NCBI RefSeq assembly: GCF_040938485.1
Contig: NW_027272057.1
Coordinates: forward strand, 1-64,000
Direction of reading: 5' to 3'
Length of the DNA: 64,000 nucleotides
Source: Diadema antillarum
Taxonomy: Eukaryota
The notes below the pieces were generated by a model. The model saw only the letters and a program-made list of their open reading frames with translations, was not told the origin of the DNA and searched no databases. This document shows, piece after piece, positions 833 through 53,400 of the stretch (positions are counted from its first letter, which is position 1; each line of letters opens with the position of its first letter). The translations under genes and the position numbers were made by a program.

Positions 833-833
<1 letters not shown>

Positions 834-883
<50 letters not shown>

Positions 884-1156: not shown

Positions 1157-1200
1157 TACAGACCACAAGACGCTACAAAGATCTGAGCATTATTACTAAA

Positions 1201-11474: not shown

Positions 11475-11536
<62 letters not shown>

Positions 11537-14040
11537 CTTGAAACAATATTCTTGTACGTATATACGATTAGGAAAAAAGATATCTGCACCTCCTCCCCCC
11601 CCCCCCACAAAAAAGAGAACATTTTTAGCTGTTACCTAGGAGAGTGTTGCTCTATATTCAGATGACATCCGTGCGTGGCCGATAATTTCTTCATTTCATA
11701 TGAATCTGAAAAGTTTTCAGAAATATTTAATTCTTGTTCTTCGTTCTGTTTTGGATCAATGATAGATTTTTGTTGGTTGCATCTCGGGAAGGAATGATGC
11801 CTTCTATTGCCTCTATGATACACGTGGACAGGAAGACACCTTTACCTGCTGCCGTTGTCATGGTGACGAACAATAGTTTTTCTTCCACATCAATGAACTT
11901 AGTACATACCTTGTACATGAGGATCACAATGTCCATGTAGCTTATTCCATACAATGGTTTAATCTTTACAGTGGTACTCTTGAACGGACTCATTTGTGCT
12001 TGTAATAAGGTACAATGCAGGAGGGGATTATTATACTTCTTTATTTTCTATTTAAAAATAGATAGAAATAATAGATAGGGGAGGGTACGTGTGCCCCCCC
12101 CCCCCCCTCAAATTTTGCAAAGGCGGCTCCTCTACGGAATTCCTGGATCGCCCCTGATGTAATATACAAATCATGTTCTTTGCTCTGAAAACAAACATGA
12201 TACCTCGGTCACAGTTATGGTTCATAGTACAGGTTTTTTTTCGGTTTTTTTTTTTTTTTTTGATCAAATAGGCATTTTCTGCTTTCCTTATGTAGTATAA
12301 GTAAGTCACCTGGTCTTAACTTATATCATTCTGTTCTCCGTTTCTCTTTCACAAACACTTATCATTCGGAGCTTACAGCTAATAAACAAGCTTGCTTTCC
12401 TGTAGGTCCCGTCATATTTCTCTTTTGTAAAACCCAAACCGAGATTTCAACGAGTTATCATTGTAATTACTGTGTATATCATGTATGTATATTTTTTCGT
12501 TTTGTATATTATTGCCAAGGAACAAGAATTTGTGCTTTCAGTTTGATGTAATATTGGTATATAATCATTAGAAGCATGAAATAAATCAAATTGAACTGAA
12601 TTGAACTGAACTGATTGCAGTGATGATAGCGATGATTATTAATCGGTGATAACACAACACACAACACGCGTCGTGGAAGGGATGTGCACTTATTTAAAAT
12701 AGAATCAAATCAAATTGTCTTCTTATTTCTTTATTACCCTTAGGTAAAATCATGAATTTCGTAAATCATAGAATCATAACAAGGTATTTCTTGCATATAA
12801 TGATATTTTTGTTGTTTTGTGTGTGTTTTTATTAGTTGCCTATTGGTATACTAATGGTACTAACAATCAGTGACGTGTACCGTTTGATCAACTTCTTGAG
12901 TACAACTGGATGGATCATGAATGGTATGACGTGTTCTATTGTCCCCTATATGAGATGGAAGCGTCCGGAACTAGAGCGACCATTTAAGGTTTGTTCTATG
13001 ATTAAACCCTTCACGCTACATTCTATCTGTTTTGCAGATTGCTAAATGATGTAAAGAATATGTGCAATTCATTAATTTATGTCTATCATAAACCTGCACC
13101 CTTAAGTGTAAGAGTTCGTGAGCTCCTACCATATAGGCCTAAATGAAGCGGATTTGCCGATATTGTTTAGGTAAACTATTTTGTTAAACCACTTTAATCA
13201 TTGTATAGTGTGCGAATCGTCTTTGATTGCCTTTCCAGTCATCACTACTGATGTACTAATTATAAATATTGTTTTCTGCACGATTTAGGATCCTTTTTGT
13301 AAATTGTTTAAAGTTTTGAAAGGTTTTGTAATGATTCAATTTCAACTTCATATTCAAATTTCATATTCATATTTTCATATTTCTCACAAATAGCACAAAA
13401 AAGTCTAATTATACCATACGAAAATTGTACAAAGCATGAATTAGATGAAACTTCACCGGAATGTAAAAAAAGTTTGTCTTGGTTTAAACACAAAAGGCTG
13501 TACACATGAGTTGAGCAAGGTCATAATGTGAGAAGTATGATGAGGCCTGATTAAAAGCAAGCTCATACAGCCGCAGGTCCCGTGATAAATCAGATTAGGG
13601 GAATTATGAAATACAAATATTCCAGACCATACTATGATTATTTGTTATAGGGGAACCAATTAAAAGAAAAATCCGATCAAATAAATGTCACTTGAACAAA
13701 ATACCAAATAATGCTCCTTAAAAAGGCGTAGTTTTGACAACAAGATGTACAAGTATGTGTTATTAACCTGTTAAAGACAGTATCTGACATCCTCCTGCAG
13801 GTGCCTCTGGTGATCCCTGTTGTATTCTTCCTGTTCTGCGTGTTCATCGTCGTCATGTCTCTCTACAGCAGTCCAGTGGATTGTGGGATAGGTTTGGCAA
13901 TCTTCTTTGGTGGAATACCTGTCTATTACATCTTTGTCTGGTGGGAAAACAAACCAGTCTGGTTCAACCAAGGCATGGGTAAGTGATCTTTTTTTTTTTT
14001 TTTGGGGGGGGGGGGAAGGGGTTGTTCCTTAGGCGATTTC

Positions 14041-14086
<46 letters not shown>

Positions 14087-14477
14087 GATATACGCAATAC
14101 AATGCCAAAAATATGCAACTCTACACTTTATGAGTAAAACAAAATGCACAACATGAATAATAGAATAGTTTGTCAATGATAATGAAGATTAATCATATCT
14201 TCAATATTGGTCTATATCCTTCATATGCATACATTTCAGGAACATCCTCATTACGGTAATGATATGGTGTTTCTTCCACGGCGGCTGAAAGGTATAAATG
14301 TACAAGTAAAAAAAGAAAGAATGTATTTGGAGTGTGTAAAATGATGATAAACATTGTTATTCCGTTATATGTTTACCTACTTGCATGATATCACCATTTT
14401 TATGAGGGGGCCCAGTCAAATACTTACAAAACCAACAAAAACAGTTTGTGTAGTATAAAAAACAATACAAACATTAT

Positions 14478-14531
<54 letters not shown>

Positions 14532-26886: not shown

Positions 26887-27135
26887 CGCTCATGTATAAA
26901 TGCATCCACGGACAAGCCCCAACCCAAATATGCAATGATATTGGGATGATTTTGACAGGCATGGGTTTGATACAAAAGCAGCTGATTCGTTGAATGTGGT
27001 ACCACCTAAACCCAAAGTAGAGAATTTTAAAAGCGGCTTTAGACATGCAGGAAGAAAGGAATGAAACTCACTACCAAATGTCTTGAAGAAATCAACGTCA
27101 CTATCAACTTTTAAAGAATTGTATAAGAAAATGCA
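26887..27135 (+). mobile_element. LINE ORF2 3' remnant
   Basis: Translation LMYKCIHGQAP...VPPKPKVENFKSGFRHAGRKE*NSLPNVLKKSTSLSTFKELYKK resembles the C-terminus of CR1/L2-group ORF2 (WNSLP mutated to a stop). Confidence 0.65.
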
Positions 27136-27763
27136 TTTCACTGATTTCATTTAACGCCCCGCTCTAGTATAGCATTACACTTTCTTTCTGTTATACCCGT
27201 TTATATGAGCCAATTTTTGCCGTACAATGTATATTGTATGGTGTTTGTGTGCATGAGTGCTTGAATATGTGATTTGGACATCCTTCTTATACTTGTCTTT
27301 TTGATGTTTGATTTTAGTGTGTATGACTGTTTGTATCTTTTCATTGTTAACTTTTATACAGGCACCTATTTTTGCTTTTCTATTGATTATTGTGCGAATT
27401 CAAGTTCCTGCTGGAAGAGTTTTAAGGTCATATTGTACGCTAGTGGCTTGATTGTATATACAACTTTATTTTTACTTTTTTTTTACATACGTATATGTTT
27501 TGTAATTGTTTTGTACATCCGGTTACAACTGACTTCAACTGGGCGTGTTGCTCCTTCACAGTTTTTTTTTTATATTTATGCAATGTGAGTTTACATTCTT
27601 ATAGGCCTATTTGGATTGTTCAGGACCTTGATGTAAAACAGCACTCACGTGCGAATCTTGTTATCCTGTCAAAATAATTATGTTGAAATAAACAGATAAA
27701 AAGGAATCATATCTTCCAGATAATAATATGAAATGTTAGTCTATATAATTTGATTGATGAATA

Positions 27764-27831
<68 letters not shown>

Positions 27832-29273
27832 CTGTGTGTGTCTGTGTGCGTGTAACTGGTTTTCTGCCGATGAAGCAATTACGAAGAAACAAAAGCGAAT
27901 GATTATTTACAGTTTGAAAATAGTTTGCTTTTCATACAATGGCTATGTATATGTCAATAGCTCTGCTCCAAGATGGTACTAAACCAGTCAATATTTCTTT
28001 GTTTCATCATCATAGGAGATATCTGCTTATAGTGACTGAGGAAATTATAGATCCTTCAAGGTAATTAAACTTACCTGAACATCTCATGGTCAGTAACTCC
28101 TGTTTTAGATGAATCATTCAGTGTCATCTGTTTCTTTAATATGGATGATAACAACAGCGAAGGGGATTGAGTAAGAGAATTTCTTCATTATTACTGTCGT
28201 TATTATCATCATTATTATCATTGCTACTATTATTATTATCATTACTACTACTACTACTACTATTACTGCAATTATTATTGCCAGTTAACTGGAACACTTC
28301 AACCTCGTTAATCATGACCGTTTACACTACAAGATTAATATTTTTCAGACTATTCGATGAGCTAATATGGGAATACCTCCATTTTCTCCTTGATACGCAA
28401 TATTTTAACCCTTGTTTTGGTTCTTGATTTTTTTTTCAGAACGATCCCAAAAGCTGTCGTTATATCTATGACGATAGTAACGACTGTATACTTGCTGGTG
28501 AATGTCGCTTACTTTACGGTTTTATCTGCTGAAGAAGTTTTATCTTCCACTTCAGTAGCTCAGGTACATAGACATTTTTGTTTGTTTCATGCCACTATAA
28601 TCCGACAGCGCATTTTTACATTCCAAAACTCCGTTTATTCAGATGAATTGTGATTTTCAGAGTTTTTAAAAAGCAACTTTGATAATTCATTCTAAAATAT
28701 TTAACCCGTAACTTCTATCTCTTGTTCTTTTACATTTTGAATATGTGAATATAATATATTTCTTTTCTGCTGCATGTGCTATTTTATGCTGTAAATCGAT
28801 ATACGGGCTCAATGAAAAACAACCGTGAGCCAGATAGTTTTTAAAATCCTTTTGGAAGTGAAGGGAAATGAAACAAACGCAAAAGATACAGATATGCGAT
28901 TAGGATGAGAATGCCCCCATCCACTTTGTCATTATGACGAAATGGAAACAATATCTCTGTAGTCTGCAATTGTTTATTTATTATATTAATTATTATTATG
29001 ATTAATCTATCTCTATTTGTGTGAGATGGGCCTTACTTTTATTGGATGCTTTGTGGTTCTATCATTGCATCCACAGTGTTGTTTCCACAGGCAACATAAT
29101 TATCTACAACGAATATTTTAGTGATTTGTTGTTTTTTATCTTTATTCTTTTCGATTTTCATTAGGAATTTGGTCAACATGTTTTTGGAAGTTTCTCGTGG
29201 ACAATGAGCTTGGGTGTGGCTTTGTCTTGCCTTGGAAGCGTAAATGGTACAATCTTCTCCTTTTCAAGGTACC

Positions 29274-29760
29274 ACTGACTGACAAATTGCCCTACATCGA
29301 CGTAAATAAGCACTGAATATTCGTCATTGTAGTACTATTATATATAGCCATGACAAAAAAAAAAATCGTGGGCGTAGGGGAGACCGGGTCTAGTTGTTAC
29401 AATTTTCACATTTTTAGGTCTGTACAAAAAACGAATAGAGGAATCGGCTTCATTTTTGCTTTGAGGATACCTTATTTCTTCCTTTACTTAAAAACAGTAC
29501 AAACTTTGGAAGTCCAGATAATATAAACAAGATATTACGTAATCAATAAACACAAAATTTTGTAACAACTTTCCCCGATGTTGGGGTAAGTTGTTACAGC
29601 ACATGGGGTACTTTGTTACACCGTAGAAAGTCAACTCAAATCGGGTAATGCAGATCTGACGTGTTAGGTAATTTTTAATATTAACCTGTCTGGGTGTGCA
29701 TGTTAGCCTATGCTGGGGTGTATGAGTGTGTTAAGTATGTGGGTGTGTGTGTGTGTGTGT

Positions 29761-29794
<34 letters not shown>

Positions 29795-30300
29795 CCATAA
29801 ATTCCATTGAAAGTGCATTGGGGTAAGTTGTTACACCACTCCATTCTCCAGACGGGTCAAGTTGTTGTAACAACTTGACCCAGTGCGTTTTCAAAAACTT
29901 TTCACACGTTTGGTCAATAAACAATCAAACATCACGTGTTGCTACTTTCACCAAAAGACAGCCAAAACACGCTTCTTTCAACCACATACTCATCACTTAC
30001 TGGAGAAGAATGGATTTGGTGTAATAAAGAAAAATCGAATTTTTCAAAATTTTACTCGGAGAGGTAAAAAAGTGTTTTTTGGACCTACCTTCTACATGTG
30101 ACGTCCAGGCAACGCCAGATTTCGCATGCAGAGATCGTTGGCTATACGTTTTGATTTGATATTACTTGTATAACGCCATCTTTTCATCATAATAGAGAAA
30201 ATGACAGTGTAACAACTTGCCCGTGTAACAACTAGACCCGGTCTCCCCTAAATACGCGAGCAGGATTTAAACATACGACCTCCTAATCTCCGGACAACAC
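29274..30300 (-). mobile_element. tRNA-derived SINE interrupted by a MITE
   Basis: Joining 29274-29376 to 30251-30300 reconstructs a copy of the 16135-16300 SINE. Confidence 0.7.
29377..30248. mobile_element. MITE with a perfect 25-bp TIR and TA target duplication (Tc1/mariner-pogo-like)
   Basis: TA-ggggagaccgggtctagttgttaca ... tgtaacaactagacccggtctcccc-TA; the tgtaacaact motif is repeated internally. Confidence 0.9.
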
Positions 30301-30314
30301 TAACTGTCGGGCCG

Positions 30315-30394
30315 GAGCTCGTTGGCCTAGTGGATAAGACGCCCGTCCAGTGATCAGGAGGTCGTAGATTCGAATCCTGCTCGAGTATGTACGC
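30315..30394 (+). mobile_element. tRNA(Arg)-like SINE head
   Basis: A-box TGGCCTAGTGG and B-box GATTCGAATCC are present, but the acceptor, anticodon and T stems are mismatched. Confidence 0.6.
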
Positions 30395-32119
30395 TGCAAC
30401 AACACCATAGCATATGATCACATTAGAAGAGAACAATTATTTTGATATCCGAATAGATTGTAAAAAATACATTAACAAAATCTTTCTGCATTATTAAAGA
30501 ATGGGAATGATAGAACAATTCTCGTACGTACGATAATGAAAGAAGTTCCCCATCCCCTCTCCCCAAAGAAGAAGAAGAAGAAGAAGAAGAAGAAGAAAGA
30601 AATAGAACCTGAAGAGCAGTTCCCTTTATATTCAAGCTAAGTAAATAATTATTTTCTTTGTCATTTCAGATATATTTGAAAACTAAGAAATATCCAATTT
30701 GTGTTCTTCATTCTGTTTTGATTAATGATAGATTTTTGTTGGTTGCGTCTCGGGAAGGAATGATGCCTTCTATTGCCTCTATGATACACGTGGACAGGAA
30801 GACACCTTTACCTGCTGCTGTTGTCATGGTGACGAACAATAGTTTTTCTTCCAGGATAACTTCTGTGTTCGTACCTTGTGTGGACGTTGCGCTCCTCATA
30901 TGAAATAAATTGCATATGAGGAGCGCAACGTCCATATAGCTTATTCCATACAATTATTTGTGGTTTAATCTTTGAAGTGGTACGCTTCAACAGACTCATT
31001 CTGTGCTCATAAGGTATTGTCTATTATGTAAACTCAAGACTGATTACGATGAGAGTACATGTACTGCCGATTGCAGTGATGACAGCGATGCTTTAATAGC
31101 AATCAATGATAAATCATCGTGTAGCCTCTACTTTCATTAGTGTTGTATAATCGTTACTCTTACTGGACTTAAAAGGTAACAAAATCCAAATAAGTATGTG
31201 GATTGAGTAAAATGTTGAAATATTTGATTTGAATTATATTATTGGTACCTGCATTATCATTGTACATGCACTATACATGTACACATACGTTGAATCAAAT
31301 CAATTTGTCCTTGTATTTCTTCACATAAGTGTCTTTCTTTAACATCACGAATTTCGTTAATCGTAAAACCATAACAGGTTATCGGAATGAGAATCTTGTA
31401 CAGTTTGCCAACATCTCATTACTAAGAGGTAAATTCGATTAATCGAACATGTCGCCACTGTTATACCCCCTGTACGTACGTAGGATGAATGTCAAATCGA
31501 AATGAATGAAACTGAGACGTAGCCAAATTTGTTCTCATATGGCATTTTCTTGCTTACAATATGCTCTTTGTTTTTCGCAGATGCCTATTTGTGTGCTTAT
31601 GATAATGAGCAGTGACGTGTACAGTTTGATCAACTTCTTGAGTATAACTACATGGATCACTGTCGCTGCGACGTGCTCCATTGTCCCCTATATTAGATGG
31701 AAGCGTCCGGAACTAGAGCGACCATTTAAGGTTTGTTCTACGATACGTTGCAATCCATCCATTTTGCACATTAATTGCTAAATGAAATGTAAAGAATATG
31801 TAGAATTTGTCATTAAGCCTACAGTCCATCATAAACCTGCTAGAAATCCAGTACAGGTTAAATCTATCTTGCTATTGTCCTGGGAACTACCCCCCCCCCA
31901 AAAAAAAAGACTTTAGTTCGTTTCTAGACTGACTAAAATGAAACAAAGGGAAATTGATATAATGATATCTCATTATATCTCATGACTGAAGGTGTCTCCT
32001 TTGCTTATCATATTAATCGGAGTTGGATATACACTCTAAGGAAACATGCTGAAACCTGAGTGTTGTCATTGATTCATATGACTTTCCACATTTCCACTGT
32101 TTTACAGAGGAGGGAGATT

Positions 32120-32735
32120 TCAGTTGCGAAATTTATCGCACATTCGCAAGTATCTCACTCCAAAGACAACTGAATGCGTGGTTCACTCTCTTATATCTTC
32201 TCGTCTTGACTTTGCAAATGTGAACTTGATAAACCTTCCAGATTACCAAATACATCGCCTACAGCTGATCCAACACTCTGCCGCTAGATTAGTAACTCTC
32301 ACGAAGAACACTCCACACATCTCTCATGTCCTCCATAAATTGACAAGCGAATTCTCTGCAGGATCTTGATCCTAATTGTCGGTTCACTACATGGCACAGC
32401 GCCAAGCTACCTTCAGAAACTATTCCAGAAGTACAAACCAACTAGATTTCTTTGTTCATCCACTGCGCATACCCTTCGAGTTCCCCGTACTCATCATTCA
32501 TGGGGCAACAGAGCTTTCACTCAGTCTGGCTCTTCTCTCTGCAACTCATTGCCTTTGAAACTGAGAATGCATGGAGACCTCATTAACTCTTTTTTTTTTC
32601 ACTAACTCCTGCGTTTCTTTTCGATCGTGGGTCTTTCCAAATGAAGCAATGTGAAAGGAGGTCTCACCCTATGTGACAGACATGGCGCATTAAAAGACTC
32701 CATTATTTTTTTTATTATCATTATTATTATCATCA
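32120..32735 (+). mobile_element. L2-like LINE 3' fragment
   Basis: Translation RNLSHIRKYLT..VHSLISSRLDFAN..RLQLIQHSAARLV..HGTAPSYL..LRVPRT..GNRAF..NSLP; ends in a ttattatt tail. In intron 8 of copy 2. Confidence 0.85.
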
Positions 32736-35105
32736 TGATTATGAAGAAAACCGACTTGCCGAAGTTGTTTACGTAAACTATTTCTTTTTTTATTAACCAT
32801 CGTGATTATTGTAAATTGTGATAATCGTAAAATGTATGTGATGGCCTCATCAGTCATCACCACTTACTTATTGGTAATAATTATTGTTCATCCTGCATGG
32901 CTTGTGAACCTTTTAAACAATTCTACTTGAACTCGCATAGTTTGGACAACGAGATTTGGGTGGTATTCACCTGTTCAACAATTTGACTTTCTTCTTTTGC
33001 AGGTGCCTCTGGTGATCCCTGTTGTATTCTTCCTGTGCTGCATGTTCATCGTTGTCATGTCTCTCTACAGCAGTCCAGTGGATTGTGGGATAGGTCTGGC
33101 AATCTTCTTTGGTGGAATACCTGTCTATTACATCTTTGTCTGGTGGGAGAATAAACCAATCTGGTTCAACCAAGGCATGGGTTAGTGCATCTTTCCTTGG
33201 TTCCTTAAACCATGTTAAACCATGTAAACCATATTATACTTGGTGGACATTGTCACAAGTGTGACAGAGCATTAGAACACAGTGTCGGTAGTATGAACAT
33301 TTATTTGGCACTTTTAAAATTATTATTTAAAGTCATAAACGAATAAAAGGTTTATAAATGGACCAATGTCGAGCTGGGAAGGAGTGATATTTACCCTCGG
33401 GAATGACTTGTCTGTTCACCAGAGATACCGTTAAAGCAGAATTCCAAACCAGCACATTTTACCAATAGCAGATCTATAGCATCCAGAAGCACATTGATCT
33501 ACAGCACATGAACTAAAGTTTTTTCGTGTGTGATGAGATTTTATGGCACACGATGATGATATTATTTTCTTGCTGGACTTTGTAATATTATTGAGCTCAA
33601 CAGTTAATCACCTAATTGACGAGTAGCCTCTGTAGACCAACACGTACCTCTCTTTGTGTGCGACTGTGATAAGGATCCTTCCTGTTTGTGTGTGTTTCAA
33701 TTTTAGATCGGGCGACGATTTTCCTCCAGCAGCTCCTCTGCGTCGTGCCTCCTGAACCCGAATCCGAGATCTGAATCCATGAGCCAAACTCGCCATCCGG
33801 CGAAATTTAAGATATCCAATAAGACCTCGGTCCTGTCTCAAAATCATAATTGGGTTGCCAAGTTTCTTCAGTTTGTTATTGTATTGGCTTGCTGATGCAG
33901 TCATAATCCACATCCATAATGGTCTTGTATGGTATATCAACCACGGCCGAGACGGTCATGCTATTATCAGAAGGAATGGCCTTCAAGGAGGATGTACCAA
34001 GATGAGTCAAAGGCATCACTTACGGACTAGTAAGGGTTGTTTGCAAGTAAATTGCTTACATTGCGTTTGCCAAATTAAAGGAGATCATTTCATTTAAAGA
34101 TCAATTATTGAAACACTTGTATTTGATATATATTTGTGACATCAGCTTTACCTAGCTTGACCCTTCCAAAACCAACGGCCCCTGGATATCTTCACGGATA
34201 ACTCCACATAAGTACATGTTTGCTAAAATTTGTCTTGTATCGAACACGCTGGTACATGTATATTGTTTGATGTTGGTAAATGGTTGAATCAGCGCTATCA
34301 CGTTTCCTGTTGTGTTAATAGAATAAATGTCAGCCGGCTTTGGCATGCTACATCTGGCTTTTTGCGACGTACTGCGAATATATATTTCGTCATATTTTGT
34401 TTACCCAGACAATGGACCCTATTTTAAACAATTTGCGCTGATGGTAGGGCTTAACGAAAACCCACAAGTCCCTTATCTTGCGCCCAATTTATTGAGTGGT
34501 ATCTGCGGAATGGCAAGTTGTGAAAGAAAGCAGTATATAGGAAACTGTATGAAACAAGCGGAAATGGCAATGAACGAAGAAAAATAAGGTGTGTTGAGTC
34601 TAATCACTTGCCCCCATCTCGTCGGCATTTTTATTTCAGCATGGCGTGCATCTCCGTATTCAAGTTGTAAGTAATTACAATTAAGGGCCATATATTATGA
34701 AGAGCGGTTCATCATCACATAAGTTAGTGGTGGACATCCGCATGAACACTTCGCAATGACGTTCGAAAAGCACAAGTTAAACCTAGAACGTATTCTAGTT
34801 TTTGTAGCGAACATATCTTATTGAATGATACATTTGTGGAAGGAGGCAATAGAGAACTTTACGAGGGACAAATGAAAATGACAAAGAATGTTGAAGAAAA
34901 TGACGAAAATGTGATGAGTGTAATCATCTAACAAATATATGTATGTCTAAGCGTTCATCTCATTATGTCGGCTTATGGTAGGTCGAAGATTTTGTTCGAC
35001 GAGGGCACAGGCACAGTTGTACATGTGATTGCTGACCATGATATTGCCAGTTATGACTGTATGAACTTCTGTAAGATTTTAAAGTCACATAATACAGAGC
35101 AAGGT

Positions 35106-37540
35106 TTAAAAATGATTGATAATACAAGTGTCCGAGCCGAATTCGAAAACATTGACGAAGCCGCATCGTGCAGAGTGATTGACACTCGAGTATGGCTTGG
35201 TCCCACCTGCAGAACCCCTACAAGAGCCCTGGGAGAGATCGCTCTCCCAGCCATCGCCGTTCTGGATGTACGCCTTGAGATCGAACCACCCGTCCTTGGT
35301 CTCATCACAGTTCATAGCAAAGTCTACCATCCAGTAATGCTCACCCCATTCGTTCAGTGGGGTGTAGCCGTAGCCGTCGGACTGCACGTTGGATGCTTTT
35401 TTAGGATCATTGGTGGTCCATACAAGAGGGGTGCCTTCGGCGAAGGAGCCACGATAGCTCCCTTGGTCGATTTCAGCTCCGTTCCAATCGAGAAAATCAT
35501 CACCTGACTTCCAAGAATTGAACTTTTCATTGCTCCCACCAATGTTGTGTGAGATAGGAATGCCACGAGCGTGATGGTTGGCTCCTCCCCTGATGAACAA
35601 GTCCTGTCCAGAAATCGCCTCTTTGTGCACAAATATGACAGTGCGTGCCCAACAGCGGGCGTCAATGTGAATAGCTGCCATAGGGTCATCACCGACGTCG
35701 ACATTGAAGTGTGCGAAACCACTGTTGTCAACATTGATTGTAGGTCCACTACAAGAGCCTGAAGTTGAATTGAAATCTCCCAGAATGATGTTACAATACT
35801 CGCCGCCTGGAAGACCGGTGTACAGCCATTCAGACAATGGGTGCGTGTCTGCATTCAGAACATAGAATGCTTTATTTCCACAACCGAATGCGATCTGATT
35901 ATGTCCATTGTCCCACCAGTTGGAGAGGCCCTGACCATTGGCGGTGTTGCGAAAACCAACCATGTTCCTAATCTGCCTCCAGCGATGTTCGCAGACCCAA
36001 TCCCCACCGCAAGTACCGTCAGGATTGATGGTTACAGAATCAGTGTTTCCGGTGTCGTCTAATGGCGGGCCCTTGTCAGTGTCGTGATGAAATTTGAAGC
36101 TGCTCATGAGCCGTGTCAAGCCATAGGGGTAGGCCAACATAAAGGTCGTTGCCATTTTGTACTCACGGGGATTTTCGTGAGTGATGATGTTGCCCCCTCC
36201 ACCGTGCCCTCGCTGGTTGTCATGGTTATCCACAAAGACAAGAGCAAAGTCATCTCGCAGCATTCCCCATGCCTCGCCAAAGTTCTTCAGATGTTTCATT
36301 TCATACCGGCCTAATTTCAATCGTTCACCAAGATGTAATCCGTACTTAAACTCAGTCACTCGACCGTAAGGAGTATACTCGCTAGCTTTGATGGGTTCAC
36401 CACCCTGATCAATAACTTCCTGAAAGATAAAGGGACGACTACCAGAAGGAAAGAAGTCTGTGTTAAGGTCGTTCAACATGCCAAAAATTGCGCCCAGGTC
36501 AACGGGCCACATGTGTTTGCAAGCATCGACTCTGAATCCAGCTACACCGATGTCAATTAGTTTATTCAGGTACTCGGCGATTTTTAGTCGAACATATTCC
36601 TTTTCAGTATCCAAATCTGGGAGGCCCCTCAGATTGCAATTCCTAACCTGCAACACGTAAATTGTCACGGACAAAACATATCGTAATAAAGGCGTATGAA
36701 TTGATCTTCCATTCCTAAGTAAGCTTATTCCAAGACTTCACAAGAATAATCGAACAGGGAATTACCAAACAGTCCTGACTTTATCGTAGGCTATGATATG
36801 AAATACAAATTGTATTCACATCCAGCGACATGAACACTATACTTAGTAGTTATAAAAGCAGATGCAACAAATGTTTTGAAATCAGAAAAAAAAAAAGATG
36901 ATATGGATTTCATCTTACATGTGAAAGGTATCGAGGACATTATTACAGGATTATGATGTCTGAATTGAATATATAACACTTTCTCTGTGTAAGGGAAATT
37001 CTATGATTGTTTCAAAATCCAATACCAAATATGAAACTACTTGTTCCCAGATGATTTTGTTTCTCACTTTTTGACCTCACCTCAAAGATATTAGTGTAGT
37101 CGGAAATTTCGCCATCCACTGTATTGCATTTTCCACTGTGCGTATTGAAGTCCCATGAACTGTAAGGAACATTTGGAAAGTTATTGTTCCCAAATCTGCT
37201 CCCTGACGTACCAATGCCAGACCCTGAGAATGAATGAAGCAAAAATAAATAAATAGATAAATAAATAAATAAATACATAAATACATAAATAAATAGATAG
37301 ATTAAGAAAATAGATGACACTATAGTGAATAAGGAGGGTGTGCGAGTAGTTAAAATCGCGACAAAGTGTTTCATGACAAGAATTTATTTTCCAGATGTGC
37401 GGGACACGTTTGAAGCCGGTGCTTACATTCAAAGGTGTATTTGCCACTCGACAATGGTGAAAATGAAATTGTTACCAGTATATAACAGAATTATGAACTT
37501 TTGAAAACAATCTCAGAGATTAGAACACTGTAACTTTAAG

Positions 37541-37584
<44 letters not shown>

Positions 37585-39752
37585 TCAAGGCACACATTGT
37601 ACACGTGTACATTGTTTCATATTTCTCTTAACAGTCTGTCTGATCTCGTACGTACAGGCTCTTATATTTACCATGTATACACAGTCCTTCCTCTTTTAGG
37701 AAAGAAAGACTTTTATTATGGTGTGATATGTTTCTACTCTCACTCTCTTGTTGAGTGATACAAGCCTATTGTCACCACGAGTGAGAGAAAAAAACAAAAC
37801 GCCTTCTTGAATCAATTGGTTAACGGCAACTTCATTCCGTTAGGTACACTGTAATCTGGGTTTTAGGAAAATCGGCCTTGCTTCTTCTTCCCTTTTTTTT
37901 TTTTTTGTATGATAGAAGAGTAATCAGGCTTTGATAGAAATAAAACAAACTAAAAAGAAGACTGGTCTTTTCCATAAATGAGATCTTGTTTTTCTGAGTC
38001 TCACATCAAGTCATGTATAAATTTCGATTCATACTGTGTTCTAACCCACCTGAAGCATCTCCCTTCTACAATATTCATTTGTCCAAATTTCGTGATATTC
38101 TTATGTTATCAGATATGTCGTATGCACTTAGGATCAACACAAGTAATTTGACATTGACCTTCTGGGGGAGGTTCTAAGACCCAGAAATCATGAACTCTTC
38201 CTTGAATCACAGCTTTGTAGATTTTTATCATAATTCTAGCATGTTTCTTCCGGAGGGCTTGACCATTATCCTACTTCATACTATAACCTGGCATTTCCTG
38301 GTAAAATTTCGAATTAGTCTAGAATGATGTTAGGGTGAAAGAACTTGCGTAAGTGTGAACGAGCCCGGCAGTATAAAGGCTCCACAATCAACCCATCAGG
38401 CATATACCACCATTCTCATCCAATGTTAGTTCAACTGATCGTGACTTTCGGCAAACAGATTTGCATTCACACGAGGCATACATTTGGAAAGAGAAACAGT
38501 TTTGGAAAGAGTTTTGAGTTCAGTGGTGTTACCTTGCGCCATGTGGTTGATAACAGCATCGGCATAGATTCGCACTCCGACGTTGTTGCAGCGCCTCACC
38601 ATGTCTCGGAGTTCTGCATCGGAGCCGCTCCGGCTGTCCAGCTTGTAACTAACCGGCTGGTAGCGCTCCCACCAGGGTCTGAAGGGATCCAACACCACAC
38701 GGTGCTCATTGGGAGGTGAAATCTGCACGCCGCCGAAACCATAGGGGCCTAGGAATCTATCAAAATGGAAAGGGGATACAGGTATAGATGCAAGGCGGAA
38801 ACATGGCAGTTATAAATGAGGTGAAGAACAGAGAAGAAGTTAAACTCATATGAAATACATATAAATGGTTTAAAACTCCCAGGAGTGTTATTATACATTG
38901 CTCCTAATCACATTTCTCTTATTTTAAGCGTTGATAACACATCACAAAGTGAATAGAAAGGCCGAGTCTTAAAAAAAAAAGAATGAAAGCAGAACGTAAT
39001 ACGATCACTATAAGCACTTATCGAAATCTATCTTGAATCTCCCATCAGGGTAGCAAATCTCACTTTCATGCCGTGACAATAATGATTGGGACCAAAATCT
39101 GAAGTTGAGTTCAACATCATCACTCACAACGCTTACTTAAAAACGGGGTTAAAGGGTTAAACAGGGTCAAGGTAATTAACAATGACTTTCGGAAACCGTC
39201 ATATTCTCAAATAACAACAACAACGAAAACATTGTCTGCACAGGACACGAATGGGCATTCAATACAATATAACAGGTCTCAGAAAACATGGAAAATGCTC
39301 ATTTGCACTTCTCTAAACTTCTCAGGACATTAAGCAATATCAAAGAAAATTTTGGCATTTATATGGAAGGAAACATCGGAAACAATGAACTGTGCACACG
39401 TGTCATATCAAAAACCGGGGATTGTTTCACCAGAAGGCTATGAACAGTTTAAGTGCACATCTGAGAAGCAAAGGATTTCTTTTCAGTGAAGTGTCTCAGA
39501 CATTTTAATATTCTTCATCATCTTGTAGCGTACTTGTCGAAAGTTTCCTGTCTCAATTTGCCGTCCAGAATTTTGAGAAAATTTGGGCGAAGTAAAACAC
39601 TGGTTCACGTACCTTTCGCATTCCTTGGTAATGTCTGTCCATTTCCACTCGAAAAGATGTACTATGGTCTGTTTATTCTCCAATGTATTTGGATTCCATT
39701 GGCTCAGGCAGGAACCAATTAGCATCGAGAAAATAGCCAAAGATCCGATCAT
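35106..39752 (-). CDS. Amy: Secreted alpha-amylase (GH13, animal chloride-dependent type) with an extra C-terminal domain, ~682 aa, 4 exons
   Basis: Exons on the minus strand: 39752-39613, 38756-38533, 37223-37081, 36647-35106 (2049 nt). Signal peptide followed by QWNPN; [39 protein letters not shown]; catalytic motifs [15 protein letters not shown] and [12 protein letters not shown]; YGLTRLMSS (chloride-site Arg); WVCEHRW. Confidence 0.96.
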
Positions 39753-43410: not shown

Positions 43411-43888
43411 GAGTAATGTTAGAGTATAGTATCAAATTGTAGATTTCTTTTTCATTATCTATCGATAATGACAATTAAGCAAAAGTATATGAGTCCAAAA
43501 TGGGCATTCATAATATTGTTCCTCCAATACAGTATCTGATGATGTTCATTATACAATGACATCCCTGACATTTTGTATGGTTACAGTTTGCATTTACACC
43601 CGTCGATCTCTGATTCCGTCAGAAATTAGGGTAAAATATTATCTATAATTCGCATTGTCATTATGTACAGTATCATATCTCACCGATGTATACGATGTCG
43701 TATTTTTTATATGTTTGGTCAAAAACGGTAGGAACAGAAAAATACCCTGTATGACGTTCCTAATAACCCTAATCCAATATTTACCACGTCATAAAGTATG
43801 GGCTCATGATCTCCAGGAAAATAATGATAGCGCGCATTATTATATCGTAGCACAACTCACTGGCAAAAACTAGACACAGATAGTGAAA

Positions 43889-46800
43889 ATGGCTCTACGT
43901 GGAACGAAGAAAAGCCAGAAGTCAGATAGTGAATCGTATCTGAATACTAAAGATGATGACCCTATCCGTTTGTCTCGTCAAGTCACTTTACTTGACAGCA
44001 TATCTCTTATAGTCGGGGGAGTGATAGGATCGGGAATCTTCATTTCTCCTACCAGCGTCCTGGCCAACTCAGGAGGAATAGGATGGGCTCTACTCATCTG
44101 GGTGTTCTGTGGGATTTTGTCCATACTAGGGGCTCTAACTTACGCCGAGCTTGGGACGACATTTTCCGTTTCCGGGGGAGATTTCTCCTATCTTCTAGAA
44201 GCTTGTGGTCCAATCCCTGCTTTTCTGCGTTTGTGGAGCAGCATTGTGGCTTTGAGAACTGCTCCAGTAGTGGTTCTAAGTCTGACATTCGCCTCCAATC
44301 TCCTTCTTCCTCTCTATGTTGACTGCTCTAATCCTGAAGTCACTACCAGACTTACTGCAGCCCTCATGATGGGTAGGTACACATGGTTCAGTTAAGTTCA
44401 GTTCAGTTCAGTTCGAGTTTATTTCTGCATATTTTCAAGGAAATCATAATGAAATGACAACACGTGTATGTCACAACAGAATAGGAAAAAACAATATTAC
44501 ATTCATAGTATGATAATCACCATGACGACAATGAGATCAAAAGAATTGACGATACACTTGTTTCCAAGTAAAGAGGAAGAAGAATGCAGGAGCCTGCCGT
44601 CGTGCACATGCTTGATAGTGATGACAGTGATGGTCTAGGTGGGAATACGTATTACCATTATTACTGCTAATTACGTTCAGTTTAAATTACTTCAGATACA
44701 TTAAAGGATGACACGCAGTCACACTTGCTGACTTTTCTCCTGAAATTTCAAGGACATGATCTTTCTCATTAATTTCATCTCTTTTGTGAACCGCATAAAG
44801 TATTTATTTGGTGTTAAATACTTACAGGAGTGATATTCATCTTGAATAGTACCAGTGTGCCCGGAAGCCGCTTTGTGAATGCATTCATGACTGTAGCAAA
44901 GCTTGCGGCCTTGTTGGTGATCATCATAGCTGGGATCGTTCAACTTGCCCAAGGTAATGTTTCAGAAGGCTAGGAAGTTACTTTCGTAACAGTGTTAATG
45001 ATGAGCATGATGAGGAAGTTATCACGTGTCATGTGAACGTGTCATGTCTCTATTCTTCTGAGCAATTTAACAAGACATCATTCTCAAGTTTACTAATCAT
45101 ATTCAACAACTATAGTTAACTTACATCTCATAACTACTTGTGCTTCACTTGTGTTGCACCATTTTGGCTTATAATATGAGCTCTTTACAAACCATAAGAG
45201 CTGTATAAGATCAATAAAATATTATAACTACTAAATGCAACATCATAACTACTTGTACGGCACTTGTACAGTACTTGTTTTCCTATCTATACAATTATAC
45301 TATAAATGAGAGCCCTGTCTTTATTACAGTTGGGCTTAAAGGGATTGTATAGTTTTGGTTGAGTCCTAACTCCAGGTTTCTAACATTTTTTCGTGAGATA
45401 ATGAGAAACCTCTTATGAAATGTAATAGAGCATGGAATTCCAAGAGGAATTCAACGTTTATTCGATAAAAATTGGTTTTGATATAGTAGAGATATCCAAA
45501 ACAATGCAATCCCAATAAAAGATGGGACCAATCTTTTATTGGGATCATCTCTTTAACTTTGTTTTTAGACATCTCAGCCATTTCACAAGGGATTTTCATA
45601 AAAGAAACTATGAATATCTCTAAAATGGTATGCTCTGTATCATTTCAGAAGTGGTTTCTTGGCATTTCACAAAAAGCTAGAATTCTCATTTCCACAAATA
45701 GTACTATACCATCCCTTTAAGTCAGCTTGTAATCTTGTTTTCTATTTTTCATCTATTTCTTTCTAGGTAATGTTGCAAATTTTACCGGTGCCTTTGATAC
45801 GTCAGATTTCAGCTTTCGGACGTTTCCCTTGGCGGTATATTCTGGTCTGTTTGCTTATTCTGGCTGGTAGGTATTCTGAAAATATTCACCTTGGTTACAT
45901 TGCTTGAAAGAAAAACGAACAAATAATTCTACAGAAGGTTATATGCCTTCCAATCACAATATCAAAATAGATATGTATATGAATAATACACCTGTATATT
46001 TTGTAGTATCCTAGATGACCATCTCCTCCCTCCCCCCCCCCCCCCCCCTCCCGTAGATGAGAAGATTCTCCGAACAGTAGGCCCTACTCTGGAAGTCGAG
46101 GGTTTCCTTTGTGTTTTCCCCTTTATGTTCTGTCTCTTCTGATATTAAAAAAAAAAAATCACAATTTTGAGGGTTGCATCCCCATACTCTGCAGCGCCTA
46201 TCCCCTACCTCCGTTTTTTATTTGTTCCGTGGCCCCTTGAGGAAGTACTAGGTGTTTCAAAAAACATTTTCCACTTTTGATCCTTAATAGTTCAAAAACT
46301 ATTTATCCGATAAAAATGTCATTGATATGAGTAATAGCTGGGTAGTGTACAATTTGGTTGGAGGTAATTTGCACGTGAAAGCATAAATCAATTTCATCAA
46401 ATCTAAGATTGATTTTGAAGTAAGATTTCAGATTTTGATCAAATTTTAACCCTCTGTACAAAAACTGAACTTCGCACAGGAACCAATGATGTGCATGTGA
46501 GTGTGTGCTGACAATGGCCCTGAACAATGGACATGCCTGAACCACCTGTTGACTAGGCGTCAGTCTCGCGCTCCCTGGCACATGAATGCTTAATCAATAA
46601 TTCATGTGGATTGCCCTGGGCACTGCTAGTCTGAATTCATGCACGGTAGAAAGTGCTTGCAGACACCACATTTCATTCCAGCTGGCAATCATTTTCAAAT
46701 TTTGCTTCACATATCACTAAATTTGGGATGTAAATAAGCATAAATGATCTAAAGTTCCTCATTTTAATACAACTGTCTACTAATTAAATTGTCTGACAAA

Positions 46801-47447
46801 ATTTTTCGCTTTTTCGATAAAAAGCGATCATCTTTGGTAAAGAGTTCAGCAGCATTTACCATAAGGGCGATTTGTTTCACAGTAGATTTATTTAAGGCTC
46901 CATATACACAAAATATTATATACTGTAATTTCTTTTCTTTGCTTCCTGTCACGACGTTTACGATAGAACAGAAGGTATTCATTGTAATTCTGTTTTTCAG
47001 AAGTAGGGAGAGCACTGTCGCGACTCAACGACAGTATCGACAGACGTTTGACTTTACACAGATACTGCCAGAGGCTGTATAAAGACTAGCTGTGATAGTG
47101 GAATTTCTCATGAATAAATAATGAAGCATTCAAACTCTGGCCATTGTTCAGGATCATTGTCAGGGTGTTAACCACACACTCCCATACACACCCATTGACC
47201 CCTGTGCAAAGTGAAATTTTGTACAGAGGATTGATAATAGAGCAAAGTCTGGAACCTATTAACTGTGAAATTAATCATGGATTTCATGAAACTTATTTAT
47301 GTTTTCATATTTAAACCACCTTCAACCAAATTGTACACTATCTAGCTATCACTCATATCAATCACAGTGTTATCTGATACATAATTTTTGAATTATTAAG
47401 AATCAAAAATGGGAAATGTTTTTTGAAACACCTAGTATAAGCCTATA

Positions 47448-47483
<36 letters not shown>

Positions 47484-50400
47484 ACACTGTGTCGTCTCTG
47501 TAGTGCTGACGCCTTTCTAGATTCGTTTTAAGTCAGATTGCATGAAAATAATGATGGATGTATACACTGTCAGCTGCGTTTAAACAACACGTATTTCATG
47601 ACAGGTAGCCAGCCTGGTATGCAGCCTGACTGGTATAACTTAATATGTAGAGATGAATAAACCTCTGCTTGTTTTGATTCGCACCCTCGTCTTTAGGCAA
47701 TACCTGCCCCAGGTGACAGAAGAAATCATCAATCCATCCAGGTATTTGTATACTTAACTCGATATCCGTATTAAATTAAATCACCGCAAATTATTCCTTT
47801 TGCTGTTTTATTTTTGAAACCTTCTTGTGTGATTTGTTACTGACATTTGAATGATTTTCGTTGCGTAGACCTTTTCATTTCTAACGATGGTGGCTTATCG
47901 ATCGTCCTGTATGCAGAGAGCGTAACCCATAGAGTGTTCTCCAGGTTGCAATGGTTATTACTCACCAAGCACACACACAAACACACACACACACACACAC
48001 ACACGTACACACACACGTACATACACTCACACGCACACACACATTGTTTGATGCTTTATTAAAAGTTACCAGTAGAAATCCTTGAGACTGTATGTGCGGT
48101 GAGCAATAATGTTTTTTAGCGTATAATCGTATTTTCACTTTGTTTCGTGCTCACTAACTCAGTGCGACATTTCATTGAATTACCCTGGATTTTGCATCTG
48201 CACCTACAATCCGCTCTTTCCATTCTGTGTAAAATTAACCATCTGTTTTCTTTTCTTTCTATTTATCTAGTTATATCTCTTTCTCTTTCCTCTTTGTTAT
48301 TCTTTTTTTTTTATTACAGGACAATTCCATTAGCCGTCATCATTTCCATGACAATAGTAACGGTTGTGTACTTGTTGACTAACGTCGCGTATTTCACCGT
48401 GTTGTCTGCCGACCAGGTTCTCTCCTCGAGCTCAGTAGCTTTGGTATGATACCTCCCAAAAGATCTGTCATTTATGATACAATATTCTTCAAAAGAACTG
48501 TATACTGTTTGCGTTCGGTGCCAGTTTTTGTTCTTAAAAATAATCAAAGATTATACGAGGGAAAAGCGGAATCACCTTCTCAAAAAAAAAAAAAAACACC
48601 AGGTGATTCAGATAGACTAATACGTTATGTTTATAGCCGTTTTACGTTATATCAGGTTGAATATTTCGTAATAAAGCCGCAGTGACAATAAAAAGGGACT
48701 TTGAAATTTATTTTTTGTATATCAGGACTTCGGTCGCATTGTTCTGGGGGATTGGTACTGGATTTTGGGCATTGGCGTGGCTCTATCATGTCTCGGATCA
48801 AGCAATGGCACTGTATTCTCCTTCTCAAGGTAATGCAGTCTGCGAACAAAGAATGATCTCAAAGTGCGTTAATAAAAAAAAGTGATTGTTTGTATGCTTG
48901 TTAAGTAGGCCCACTTTATAGACTCACGCTAACTTACCATTCATCTCATTTCGTTAGACTAAGGGACAAGGCAAAAGTCGCAGTCAACTCTAGGCGTACT
49001 GCATGTTCGGGTTGTGAAATGATGAATATTGAAATACCATTTAATTGATTTGATTCACTTGTTGATTAATGAGTCACTTTTTCGATGAATCACTGAATGT
49101 TTTAAGCGACATGGTTTCAGCCAGAATAATCGTTGTTCCACTTAGAATTGAAATGTATTGCTATGTAGGGTTAATGGGTGATGTTCGCTATTCAGAAGGT
49201 CGTTAATCCGAAAATGAAACAAGCTTCGTAATTCTGATGGTTCATTAATCCGGAACACCTTATTCCCTATACCTAAATGTTCGTTAACACTTGTGACGTT
49301 ATTCCGAAGGTTTGTTGGTGCAAAAATGAACTAAGGTTCATCCACGTACTGAAGGTTTGTTATTCCAATATTGAAACATTTAATGACCTTTACTCTGAAA
49401 ATGAAATGAGTTTCGCCAGTCCCAAGCAATCCACTGGGAAGTTGGAAGCCGGTTGGAAGGGACACGGGGGGGGGGGGGGGGGGGTGGATGGGGGAATAAC
49501 GATTATGTCGAGTGTGGAAAGAACTTACACTAGTATCTAATTTTCAGATCAACGAACCTTATGGAAGTAATGAACCTTTCTTTCACTTAATTGCGCTAAT
49601 GAACCTTCGGAATAACACGAACCCTATTTCATATGCGGAATTATAAACCCCCGGATTAATGAATTTTCGGAATAACGACCTTAGAAATAATGAACCTTAT
49701 TTAATTTTCGGATAAACAGCCATTCGGAACAGCGAACCTTATTTCATTTTCGGAATTACGAACCGTTGGGGTGACGAAATTGCGGAATAACGCACTTTAT
49801 ATCATGACTGGTCGATAAACAAGTTTCTGATATCTTGCTATTGGGTGCTATAATCATTATACTATAATTTCGTTAATTCATCTGTCATTTAAAATGAAAA
49901 GTTATATATTTATGTGAATATGTGAATCTAGACGTACATACATGAGGACTATAGCTTTTGATTTTATGTGAATCTATTTTTGGACTGATTTTTTATAGAG
50001 TCCTATTGGTTGCATCTCGGGAAGGAATGATGCCTTCTATTGCCTCTATGATACATGTGGACAGGAAGACACCTTTACCTGCTGCTGCTGTCATGGTGAG
50101 GAAAACAATTTACTCACTTTGGAAAATCATACGAGGTGTTTGTGTGTGTTTGTGTATGTGTGTGTTTGTGCGTGTGTGCTTGTGTTTGCGATTGACATCA
50201 CGTTATTCACGTGTATTTACTGAAAGCATCACAATCATTTCGTTCTCTGTGCATCTGTATTATAGGCACCTGTTTGTCTGGTAATGCTGATCGGTGGCAA
50301 TGTCAACGCCTTGATTAATTATCTGAGTGTGACTCGCTGGCTAGTTATCGGCGCAACCTGTGCCATCGTCCCATATTACAGATGGAAGTATCCAGATCTA

Positions 50401-53400
50401 GAACGACCATTTAAGGTAAGAACCATTATTTCCGAGAGTCAAAACATGTTTTTTAATAGTCTACATATTTACCTAATAACGTGATATGGTCTTGAGTTGT
50501 ACATCAGTTTGTCTTGAGCAAATGGTAGGCCTACTAAGAAGTATGGACAAACACTTAGGATCTATAATCACAATATGTCAGCTACTAGAAGTATTATTGG
50601 AAAGACGGTATGGACAGACTATGCGGGTCCTTGAAAGTGGTATGTGCAGAGTGGCTTTACCCTATATGTGAAAATTATCGTCTTCATCCTACACATTGGA
50701 CTGCACCCTATCAGACCTATAATTCCGTATTTAGCCTGGTATAATCGACTTATTTTTCAACAGCTTCCGCTTTTGTGTTTAGCTCAACACAACAAAATGC
50801 TCGACGTACGATCAGCAACTATGATATGGGCCCTAAATATGCTCCGTCTTATATTGTCATACGGTGTCCTTGGGCATAAATATGTTCATGTGCTAATCCT
50901 ACACACGGCCGGTTTGAAGCGCTCGGGTCAATTTCACCTTTCTCCTGTTTGACCAGAAAGGGACTATGAATATTAGGGCCCCGTGGCAATGTCCATAAAA
51001 CGACCAAGAAGACAACTACTAAGGCTATTAAAACGGCGACCTATTAGTTGCATTGTGCACGTGTGCATGAATAGGCCTAGATGTCAAACGACATTTCTTT
51101 TTACAGATGATGCAGCTATGTACGGGTAATTATTTTGAAAGCCTTTTTGTATTCTCCATGTAATGGCCTTAAAAAGAAAGAAACCGCAAAATTACTTATT
51201 TGGTCAAGCGACTGTCCATGGGAGTGTCCAAAGGCCGATTAGAGTCTCTTAATTGTTCCAATCGACTGTGAACACATCGGCTTTTTTTTCATATTTGTCA
51301 GCTCTAGATTCAATTTCTCAACTTCTATCTCATTTCGGGGGATCTCTGTAAGATTAAGGGTTATACATAATAGTCCGAGGCTCTAACAGAATGTCGAAAA
51401 GGTGTGATAGTCCAAGGGTGCTAGACCGATCAAGGCAGGGGCCGCCGAACCATTGGGTTTAGGGGAGGGGCTGCAGCCCCCAGAGTTTTTGAGTCTGAAA
51501 AAAAGAGAAGAAAAAGAAAATCGGACCAAAAAAATAACATCGGACGTTTGAGTATAGCAGGTCTACAGTGTCCCTGCATCGATAATGAATACACACACCA
51601 ACAACGTGAGCACCTCCCGGCACATACACCCACATAACGCGCACTCTCAGACAGCACTGATACACAATGAAACCGTGAGATATTTTTGTTTTTCTTCTGT
51701 CTTGTGTGTGTGTCACTGTGATCTGCTGAAATTTGCTATAAAAAGCCTGTTCCTTTTTTCGAAGGTGTGGAAGGACAGCAACTTTTTTTAAACGAAAATG
51801 AATGGTAAGGTAGAAGTCAAAAAGCTTTGAATTAATATCTACTTGTTAAATTCTTTAAAAAGCAAGTCACAATGAAATTATAGAGAGTGTGTGTATCACC
51901 ATATCATCATTTTGTTTTGTTTTGTCCGCAGGTGCCTCTGGTGATCCCTGTTGTATTCTTCCTGTGCTGTATGTTCATCGTTGCCATGTCTCTCTACAGC
52001 AGTCCAGTGGATTGTGGGATAGGTCTGGGAATCTTCTTTGGTGGAATACCTGTCTATTACATCTTTGTCTGGTGGGAGAATAAACCAATCTGGTTCAACC
52101 AAGGCATGGGTAAGTATCAATCAATGATTGTAGTTGAATCTTATGTTAGCTCTTACAACAAAACTTAAAATAAAAAGAAACAAAACAAACTGCATGGAAT
52201 TTACACCACTTATAGTCTTACTACAGCTACTCAACCAAAGCATCTTCACTTCGACATACACTTTGGTCTTGATGAAAGGGAGTACGTATCTCTCCACATC
52301 GTATGGTAAAGATTTGCTTTTCTTGATCGATCGATGCAAACATCCTCACCCAGTCTTCCTTATAGGAGAACCCTGCTCTAATATCCGCTCATTTCTTTAG
52401 TGTTGGCAGAAATAGACTAGACATAGTCAAATAGCGTATTTTGCGTGTGAACTTAAACTAAAAACACATCAATGAAAACGAACATCTTTTTGTAAACCTC
52501 ATTTGCAGGCAAAGTAATATACATATTTTTTGCCTTATACTGATGAACTTAGTGTCATCATGCTTTAAAGACGTATTAAAATACTTTAAATGACAACATA
52601 GCCTGAATAATCTTGAAATGTAAAGCTTTTTATGATTATGTTACATAACATCCAATAAACAATCTCCAACATTTTTCGATATTTTTCACATCTTTTATTT
52701 TAAAGTGTTCTTAGCCATGAACTCAGTCTGTCGGTTGCTTTCATGGGCATACTTCCTTTACTATAAGTAAAGTAGTACATGAAATTCAATTGTTCTCAAA
52801 ATATCTTTTCCATATAACCAATTCATTGTAAATCGACAACGACAAAGCAGAAAACATGAAAACGTGAGTCATAAACTGTCCCCACCAATATCTTCTTAAA
52901 ATGTTAATTTTTATTCTCACCCATCAATTTCTGCAATTATATCAAATCAACAACACTAGCAGAAACAAAGAGAATGCATGCCATTGCACAAACACCCATG
53001 ATCACATCGCAGTGATGATTTCTATGACACTTTTACACAGTATTTTGGGACGTACTTGATCTTGAACTTCACTCAAACCATTTCATCTCTGTTCTACCCT
53101 CCACCTTTCCTACACCCATACATCACTAGATAAGTTATACGACAAGGGAAGTAATCACATGCAGATCATTTTTTTATATTAATCTTACTGAATGTGTTTG
53201 CAAGACAGTAAGCTATGGTAGTCAGGGTATTTGCCATTCGTGAGATCATAGGTATTCTCATATCAAGAGATTATCCACATTCAAGTAGACACATTTTCTC
53301 AATCGACAGTTATCTATTTTCAAAACAAAGGTGTACGGGTTGATCATCGACACTTGAATATCATTTGACGGATTGTTGTATAAGGAACACGAAAAGTGAC

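Follow-up and report, generated by a model that had tools for sequence, protein, structure and literature searches.

The sequence examined here comprises positions 1-64,000 of contig NW_027272057.1 (forward strand) of the Diadema antillarum assembly GCF_040938485.1; this whole stretch of 64,000 nucleotides is referred to below as the window. Three tandem genes of the SLC7/LAT type lie within the 64-kb window, all on the + strand and with ten coding exons per copy. They are called copies 1, 2 and 3, and our subject is a set of three short coding blocks that copy 3, the old member of the cluster, shares with copies 1 and 2. The exons were located by translated comparison of the copies with one another and refined on nucleotide alignments, so that the gene models rest on paralogue alignment. 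AG and GT are found at every junction of the predicted exon models, and the frames run through copies 1 and 3. The three genes are as follows.

1201-16793, + strand: copy 1, intact, 10 exons and 508 codons, identified by its frames, AG/GT junctions and Pfam AA_permease_2
1201-1681, 2839-2964, 4378-4477, 6149-6193, 6555-6678, + strand: copy 1 exons 1-5
10303-10406, 11766-11862, 12836-12988, 13801-13978, 16675-16793, + strand: copy 1 exons 6-10
22891-33774, + strand: copy 2, 10 exons matching those of copy 1, frameshifted in exon 3
22891-23371, 24707-24832, 26574-26674, 28016-28060, 28440-28563, + strand: copy 2 exons 1-5
29165-29268, 30732-30828, 31581-31730, 33003-33180, 33707-33774, + strand: copy 2 exons 6-10
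43889-53958, + strand: copy 3, intact, 10 exons and 505 codons, an old, conservative paralogue
43889-44372, 44828-44953, 45767-45866, 47697-47741, 48320-48443, + strand: copy 3 exons 1-5
48726-48829, 49999-50095, 50266-50415, 51932-52109, 53849-53958, + strand: copy 3 exons 6-10

A previous reading of the same DNA, made from the letters alone (the sequence-only reading), had modelled each gene with nine exons. That model has to be abandoned: exon 9 ends at a GT donor, and a tenth coding exon, encoding the C-terminal tail, is present 0.5-2.7 kb downstream of it. The ten-exon layout is also found at a Lytechinus variegatus locus named cystine/glutamate transporter-like by NCBI, and copy 3 is nearer than copies 1 and 2 to this Lytechinus homologue in exons 1, 5 and 8.

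The three genes are predicted to be paralogues of the light chain of heteromeric amino acid transporters (HATs), of the SLC7 LAT/xCT type. The exon peptides were compared singly. With the profile PF13520 (AA_permease_2), whose cut-off is 27, exon 1 reaches 62 bits in copy 1 and 59 bits in copy 3, and exon 5 matches profile positions 218-256. The best matches of the exon peptides are SLC7A5 LAT1, SLC7A11 xCT and SLC7A9 b0,+AT, with expectation values (E) down to 1e-42; exons 1, 7, 8 and 9 each match LAT1, xCT or b0,+AT collinearly (36-176, 351-380, 382-430 and 423-488, respectively). In a word search with the exon 1 peptide, whose length filter left only fragments and exon-sized open reading frames (ORFs) among the matches, the closest relative was a Lytechinus variegatus 'cystine/glutamate transporter-like' fragment with 63% identity; the exon 9 peptide gave no match in a word search.

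Alignment to LAT1 and xCT places transmembrane helices (TM) 1 and 2 in the middle of exon 1, TM3 in its 3' part, TM6 in exon 3 and TM10 in exon 8. The loop that follows TM8, with the beginning of TM9, falls in exon 7, and exon 9 matches LAT1 residues 433-488, in TM11-TM12. In HAT light chains a loop cysteine forms the disulfide to the SLC3 heavy chain. A cysteine in the TM3-TM4 loop of copy 3 aligns with that of xCT and occurs at the same place in copies 1 and 2. The urchin genes thus resemble HAT light chains in this xCT-aligned cysteine and in their best peptide matches, and differ from them in that copy 2 is frameshifted as assembled.

The blocks shared by the three copies have the following positions.

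1276-1500, + strand: block 1 of copy 1, exon 1 bases 76-300, encoding TM1-TM2
22966-23190, + strand: block 1 of copy 2, exon 1 bases 76-300
43964-44188, + strand: block 1 of copy 3, the shared middle of exon 1
11773-11862, + strand: block 2 of copy 1, exon 7 bases 8-97
30739-30828, + strand: block 2 of copy 2, exon 7 bases 8-97
50006-50095, + strand: block 2 of copy 3, in exon 7; the first 7 exon bases (49999-50005) are diverged
13801-13978, + strand: block 3 of copy 1, the whole of exon 9, with 7 private changes
33003-33180, + strand: block 3 of copy 2, the whole of exon 9, with 0 private changes here and 1-2 in the other haplotype
51932-52109, + strand: block 3 of copy 3, the whole of exon 9

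In exon 9, copies 2 and 3 differ at 3/178 bases, copies 1 and 2 at 7/178 and copies 1 and 3 at 10/178. The corresponding numbers for exon 7 are 7/97, 2/97 and 7/97, and 4 of the 7 differences between copies 2 and 3 fall at exon bases 2, 4, 5 and 7. Exon 8, lying between them, differs at 52/150 (copies 2 and 3), 24/150 (copies 1 and 2) and 57/150 (copies 1 and 3). The hand counts given earlier for exons 7, 8 and 9 were reproduced exactly. A similar sharing suspected in the middle of exon 1 proved real, and a sliding window delimits the core common to all copies at exon bases 76-300.

For the comparison of introns, each was aligned locally over its whole length, since 250-base flanks aligned globally were too noisy. 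All nine introns align between copies 1 and 2 (9/9, 71-84% identity). None of the nine introns of copy 3 aligns locally with copy 1 or copy 2 (0/9), including those abutting exons 7 and 9, in agreement with the sequence-only reading. The exchange had also been described as exon-restricted. This holds insofar as only coding blocks are shared and the introns are unalignable, and it fails in that three block edges lie inside exons, namely the two edges of block 1 in exon 1 and the 5' edge of block 2 in exon 7; only the exon 9 block on both sides and the exon 7 block on its 3' side end at exon borders. The process was therefore not strictly exon-wise, and the internal edges fit the ends of conversion tracts.

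The silent sites carry the main evidence. The coding sequence was divided in two: the 'blocks', with 121 synonymous sites in exon 1 bases 76-300, exon 7 bases 8-97 and the whole of exon 9, and the 'rest'. The number of synonymous substitutions per synonymous site (dS) was derived from Nei-Gojobori counts, with the counts of single exons summed. Between copies 1 and 2, dS is 0.166 in the blocks and 0.189 in the rest. Between copies 1 and 3 it is 0.161 in the blocks versus 1.66 in the rest, and between copies 2 and 3 it is 0.141 versus 2.13; outside the blocks the silent sites of copy 3 are thus saturated. Exon by exon, the proportion of synonymous sites differing from copy 3 (pS) drops from 0.59-0.98 in exons 2-6 and 8 to 0.03-0.13 in exon 9 and, once its first 7 bases are set aside, to 0.09 in exon 7. 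The contrast between blocks and rest in the distance to copy 3 is highly significant in a Fisher test on synonymous sites (p = 1e-22 to 5e-26). A Sawyer-type permutation of third positions, which follows the logic of GENECONV, likewise gave P = 0.0002 for the pairs 1-3 and 2-3, and P = 0.17 for the pair 1-2. The changes private to copies 1, 2 and 3 number 19, 9 and 10 in the blocks, forming a star, and 61, 36 and 273 in the rest. Per site, the copy 3 branch is 14-fold shorter in the blocks than in the rest, and the copy 1 and copy 2 branches are shorter by less than 2-fold. The coding sequence is thus a mosaic of two ages.

Copies 1 and 2 provide the measure of constraint. Their synonymous differences amount to 18/121 in the blocks (0.149) and 37/222 in the rest (0.167), with p = 0.76. 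Since their silent divergence is equal in the two compartments, the silent sites of the blocks are not specially constrained. Exons 7 and 9 are as saturated as the remaining exons when set against the Lytechinus variegatus homologue, with a pS of 0.59-0.76.

We propose that homology-limited interlocus gene conversion, acting near the time of the copy 1/copy 2 duplication, made the three blocks, and we assign this reading a probability of about 0.82. Copy 3 would have split long ago from the ancestor of copies 1 and 2, and these two would have separated much later (dS ~0.19). At about the time of the latter duplication, stretches of ~225, 90 and 178 bases would have been copied non-reciprocally between copy 3 and the copy 1/copy 2 lineage. 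As the introns were already unalignable, strand invasion and heteroduplex formation would have been feasible only in the best-conserved coding stretches. With pairing confined in this way, tracts would end at or near exon borders, or where similarity within an exon falls off. An origin of the young blocks by duplication of the whole gene is excluded, because the introns do not align with copy 3; only short tracts can have been exchanged. Conversion tracts of tens to hundreds of bases (10-100s), dependent on sequence identity, are known (PMC3924818), and the blocks of 225, 90 and 178 bases fit this range. The mechanism, timing and number of events are what we infer from these observations. The block dS of 0.14-0.17 for all pairs is close to the 0.19 of copies 1 and 2 in the rest, so that one episode near the duplication is enough. 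The sequence-only reading had envisaged repeated conversion keeping these modules uniform; interlocus conversion is well supported, and its repetition is not borne out.

Several points weigh against this interpretation or loosen it. Biased conversion should raise the GC content of third codon positions (GC3), and the rise in the blocks is weak (0.51-0.53, versus 0.43-0.48 elsewhere). The non-synonymous distance (dN) within the blocks is 0.02-0.04, and their low total divergence is partly due to purifying selection, because they are the most conserved segments of the protein. Each block holds 2-12 synonymous differences, and the dating and the number of events are therefore loose. The distant Lytechinus is the sole outgroup, and polarisation by it is too saturated to name donor or recipient. 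Finally, the exon models are predicted from sequence.

The alternative that survives best, though we regard it as unlikely, is continuing concerted evolution, in which conversion is frequent and ongoing, the scaffold is kept uniform by selection and conversions in the pocket exons are purged. It draws its support from exon 9, where copies 2 and 3 differ at 1 silent site in this haplotype and at 0 in the other, with ~5.6 expected at the block average. In addition, copy 2 is polymorphic at exon 9 base 39, its alleles in the two haplotypes being the copy 1 and copy 3 states. Against frequent exchange, pS in the exon 1 block is 0.17-0.20 and in the exon 7 block 0.09, with all pairs close to the distance between copies 1 and 2 elsewhere. 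Such equal pair distances indicate that no homogenisation has occurred in these two blocks since about the copy 1/copy 2 duplication. Moreover, the 7 exon 9 changes private to copy 1 occur in both haplotypes.

A 'switched relationship' had been claimed for exon 9, with copy 2 closer to copy 3 than to copy 1. The counts of 3 and 7/178 hold, but no topology can be read from them, since three sequences yield branch lengths only. These are 7 private changes for copy 1, 0 for copy 2 and 3 for copy 3, and the 7:0 split, given the faster rate of copy 1, has P ~0.04. When the sites private to copy 1 are polarised with the saturated Lytechinus sequence, 4/7 look derived and 2/7 ancestral. Together with the few silent differences between copies 2 and 3 and the polymorphism at base 39, the split hints weakly at a possible younger conversion patch between copies 2 and 3 in exon 9.

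The distribution of the helices bears on the same alternative. LAT1 has a side-chain pocket whose walls are TM3, TM6 and TM10, and the unwound parts of TM1 and TM6 hold the backbone of the substrate (PMC11828871). The description of the cluster as a constant scaffold with a variable pocket is supported in part, as TM3, TM6 and TM10 all lie in diverged parts, which is also what purging of conversions from the pocket exons would give. However, TM1, itself a pocket helix, lies in a shared block. Loss of homology is by itself a sufficient reason for conversion to have halted in the diverged exons, those of the pocket included, and selection is not required.

A second alternative, which we consider very improbable, involves no exchange at all: purifying selection, acting also on silent sites through splicing enhancers, RNA structure or editing sites, would have kept ancestral letters in the blocks. 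The blocks do encode the best-conserved parts of the protein, exon borders bound two of them, and the density of changes private to copies 1 and 2 is about half of that found elsewhere. Such constraint is nevertheless contradicted by the equal silent divergence of copies 1 and 2 in blocks and rest and by the saturation of exons 7 and 9 against Lytechinus described above. Within the blocks the branch leading to copy 3 does not exceed the other two in length, and exon 9 varies between the alleles of copy 2 (3/178 bases) at a level not below that of other parts. Silent conservation might also have come from an antisense ORF across exon 9; this was ruled out, because the silent sites are conserved neither between copies 1 and 2 nor with respect to Lytechinus.

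A variant of conversion, to which we give a slightly lower chance still, is double-strand-break repair templated on the spliced transcript or cDNA of a paralogue instead of on DNA. With such a template, tracts would necessarily end where exons end. Both cDNA-templated and homology-limited DNA conversion can accommodate block edges that fall within exons 1 and 7, and likewise an exon 8 left unconverted between exons 7 and 9.

The least probable explanation is an error of assembly or polishing, in which mixed reads from similar exons yielded consensus letters; short-read polishing can homogenise very similar paralogous stretches. We examined this against a second copy of the cluster on another contig of the assembly (G000:C395), 93-99% identical. 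As most family members occur twice in the assembly, this contig is probably the other haplotype. In it, exon 9 differs at 4/178 bases between copies 2 and 3 and at 10 between copies 1 and 3; the counts are 7-8 for exon 7 and 52-57 for exon 8. In each of two samples, short-read contigs bridge copy 3 intron 6 into exon 7, and a contig of the independent sample bridges the last 80 bases of copy 3 exon 9 into intron 9. Within the shared exons the contigs are interrupted, which is to be expected of letters common to several loci. At the 5' border of exon 9 they cover only 26 exon bases, below the bridging threshold, and sample X1 may be the source of the assembly itself. In a related organism, ~2-3% diverged in introns, exon 7-like and exon 9-like contigs are 0-3 letters from copy 3. 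The shared blocks are not an assembly artefact: the independently assembled second haplotype has the same letters, the bridging contigs repeat the pattern, copy-specific differences persist within the exons, and these exons sit in unique introns that long-read assembly would not collapse.

The window contains an assembly gap that is intergenic and outside all three genes.

20078-20222, no strand: assembly gap (N run)

It lies 3.3 kb past the stop of copy 1 (16793) and 2.7 kb ahead of the start of copy 2 (22891), and both of its flanks are collinear, on the same strand, with the second haplotype contig. A second gap, at 57067-57206, is downstream of copy 3 and outside the shared blocks.

Other differences were seen in the same material. 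The haplotypes are 92-96% identical over copy 2 (20223-31991) and 98-99% over copy 1, an amylase gene and copy 3 (1-16985 and 32129-55767). The second haplotype has ~4.2 kb extra near 45147, in copy 3 intron 2, where the alignment offset changes from -509 to +3706. The related organism (runs X3 and X4) has no contigs at 90% likeness over 50400-51356 (intron 7, exon 8 and intron 8 of copy 3) and 52311-54000 (intron 9 and exon 10). Exons 7 and 9 are nonetheless present in it, and the contig gap could be a structural difference or an effect of the filter. At position 51984 (exon 9 base 53) copy 3 has a private C, and the contigs of the second sample and of the related organism have T; the C could be private to the assembled individual, or the contigs could come from copies 1 and 2.

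In exon 3 of copy 2 (26574-26674), an additional base near 26589 throws the frame straight into a stop. Copy 2 of the second haplotype lacks one base in a T run of exon 5, and its exon 10 has a 13-base tandem duplication with loss of the stop. These changes point either to several null alleles of a decaying copy 2 or to indel errors. In almost every exon copy 1 has evolved faster than copy 2: outside the blocks it has 61 private bases versus 36 in copy 2, and, with copy 3 as reference, 37 private residues versus 10. In exon 4, copies 1 and 2 differ by 7 non-synonymous and 0 synonymous changes, and in the TM3 part of exon 1 the proportion of non-synonymous differences (pN) is above pS. These counts suggest that adaptive change in the pocket-lining helices of copy 1 is possible.

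The closest parallel is provided by the primate L/M opsins, studied in gibbons (PMC3213168). These paralogues, too, stand in tandem and combine homogenised with diverged segments; conversion among them was recognised by GENECONV-type tests, and the residues that set functional specificity lie in the diverged segments. In the opsins, homogenisation extends to the introns, and the tuning exons stay distinct through purifying selection against conversion. In the transporter copies, by contrast, the introns no longer align, and exchange reached only the best-conserved coding stretches. The GOT1 paralogues of the copepod Tigriopus (PMC3728101) resemble the present case in patch-wise conversion with persisting islands of divergence; tracts that are short (tens to hundreds of bases), identity-dependent and set between diverged parts of duplicated genes are common to the urchin genes, to GOT1 and to the general account in PMC3924818. 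GOT1 differs from the urchin genes in family and phylum, and also in that here a very old paralogue (dS >1.6) is linked to a younger pair, at a date close to the younger duplication. The process, interlocus gene conversion, is a known one found in a gene family new for it, and no new mechanism is revealed.

The arrangement has some practical consequences. Copies 1 and 2 supply a clock within the cluster, by which recent copying can be told from slow evolution without an outgroup. Trees or dS dating based on exons 1, 7 or 9 would wrongly make copy 3 a young duplicate, and a whole-gene dS averages two very different ages. The three genes also form a natural set of chimeras, having the same TM1-2 and TM11-12 and differing in TM3, TM6 and TM10, which could guide specificity-swap experiments.

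The introns of the cluster and the sequence between the genes contain further elements. Intron 5 is 3.6 kb long in copy 1 versus 0.6 kb in copy 2 and 0.3 kb in copy 3, and reverse-transcriptase-like open frames, recognised by eye only, occur at 7193-9444 within intron 5 of copy 1. Intron 6 of copy 3 holds a very high-copy repeat at 49064-49827, with many joints and loose ends in the contigs; its contigs reach depths in the thousands in each of the four runs, which cover both organisms, and depth was not used as evidence. An alpha-amylase gene (Pfam Alpha-amylase and Alpha-amylase_C) occupies 35106-39752 on the - strand, between copies 2 and 3, and its final exon is an open frame of 522 codons.

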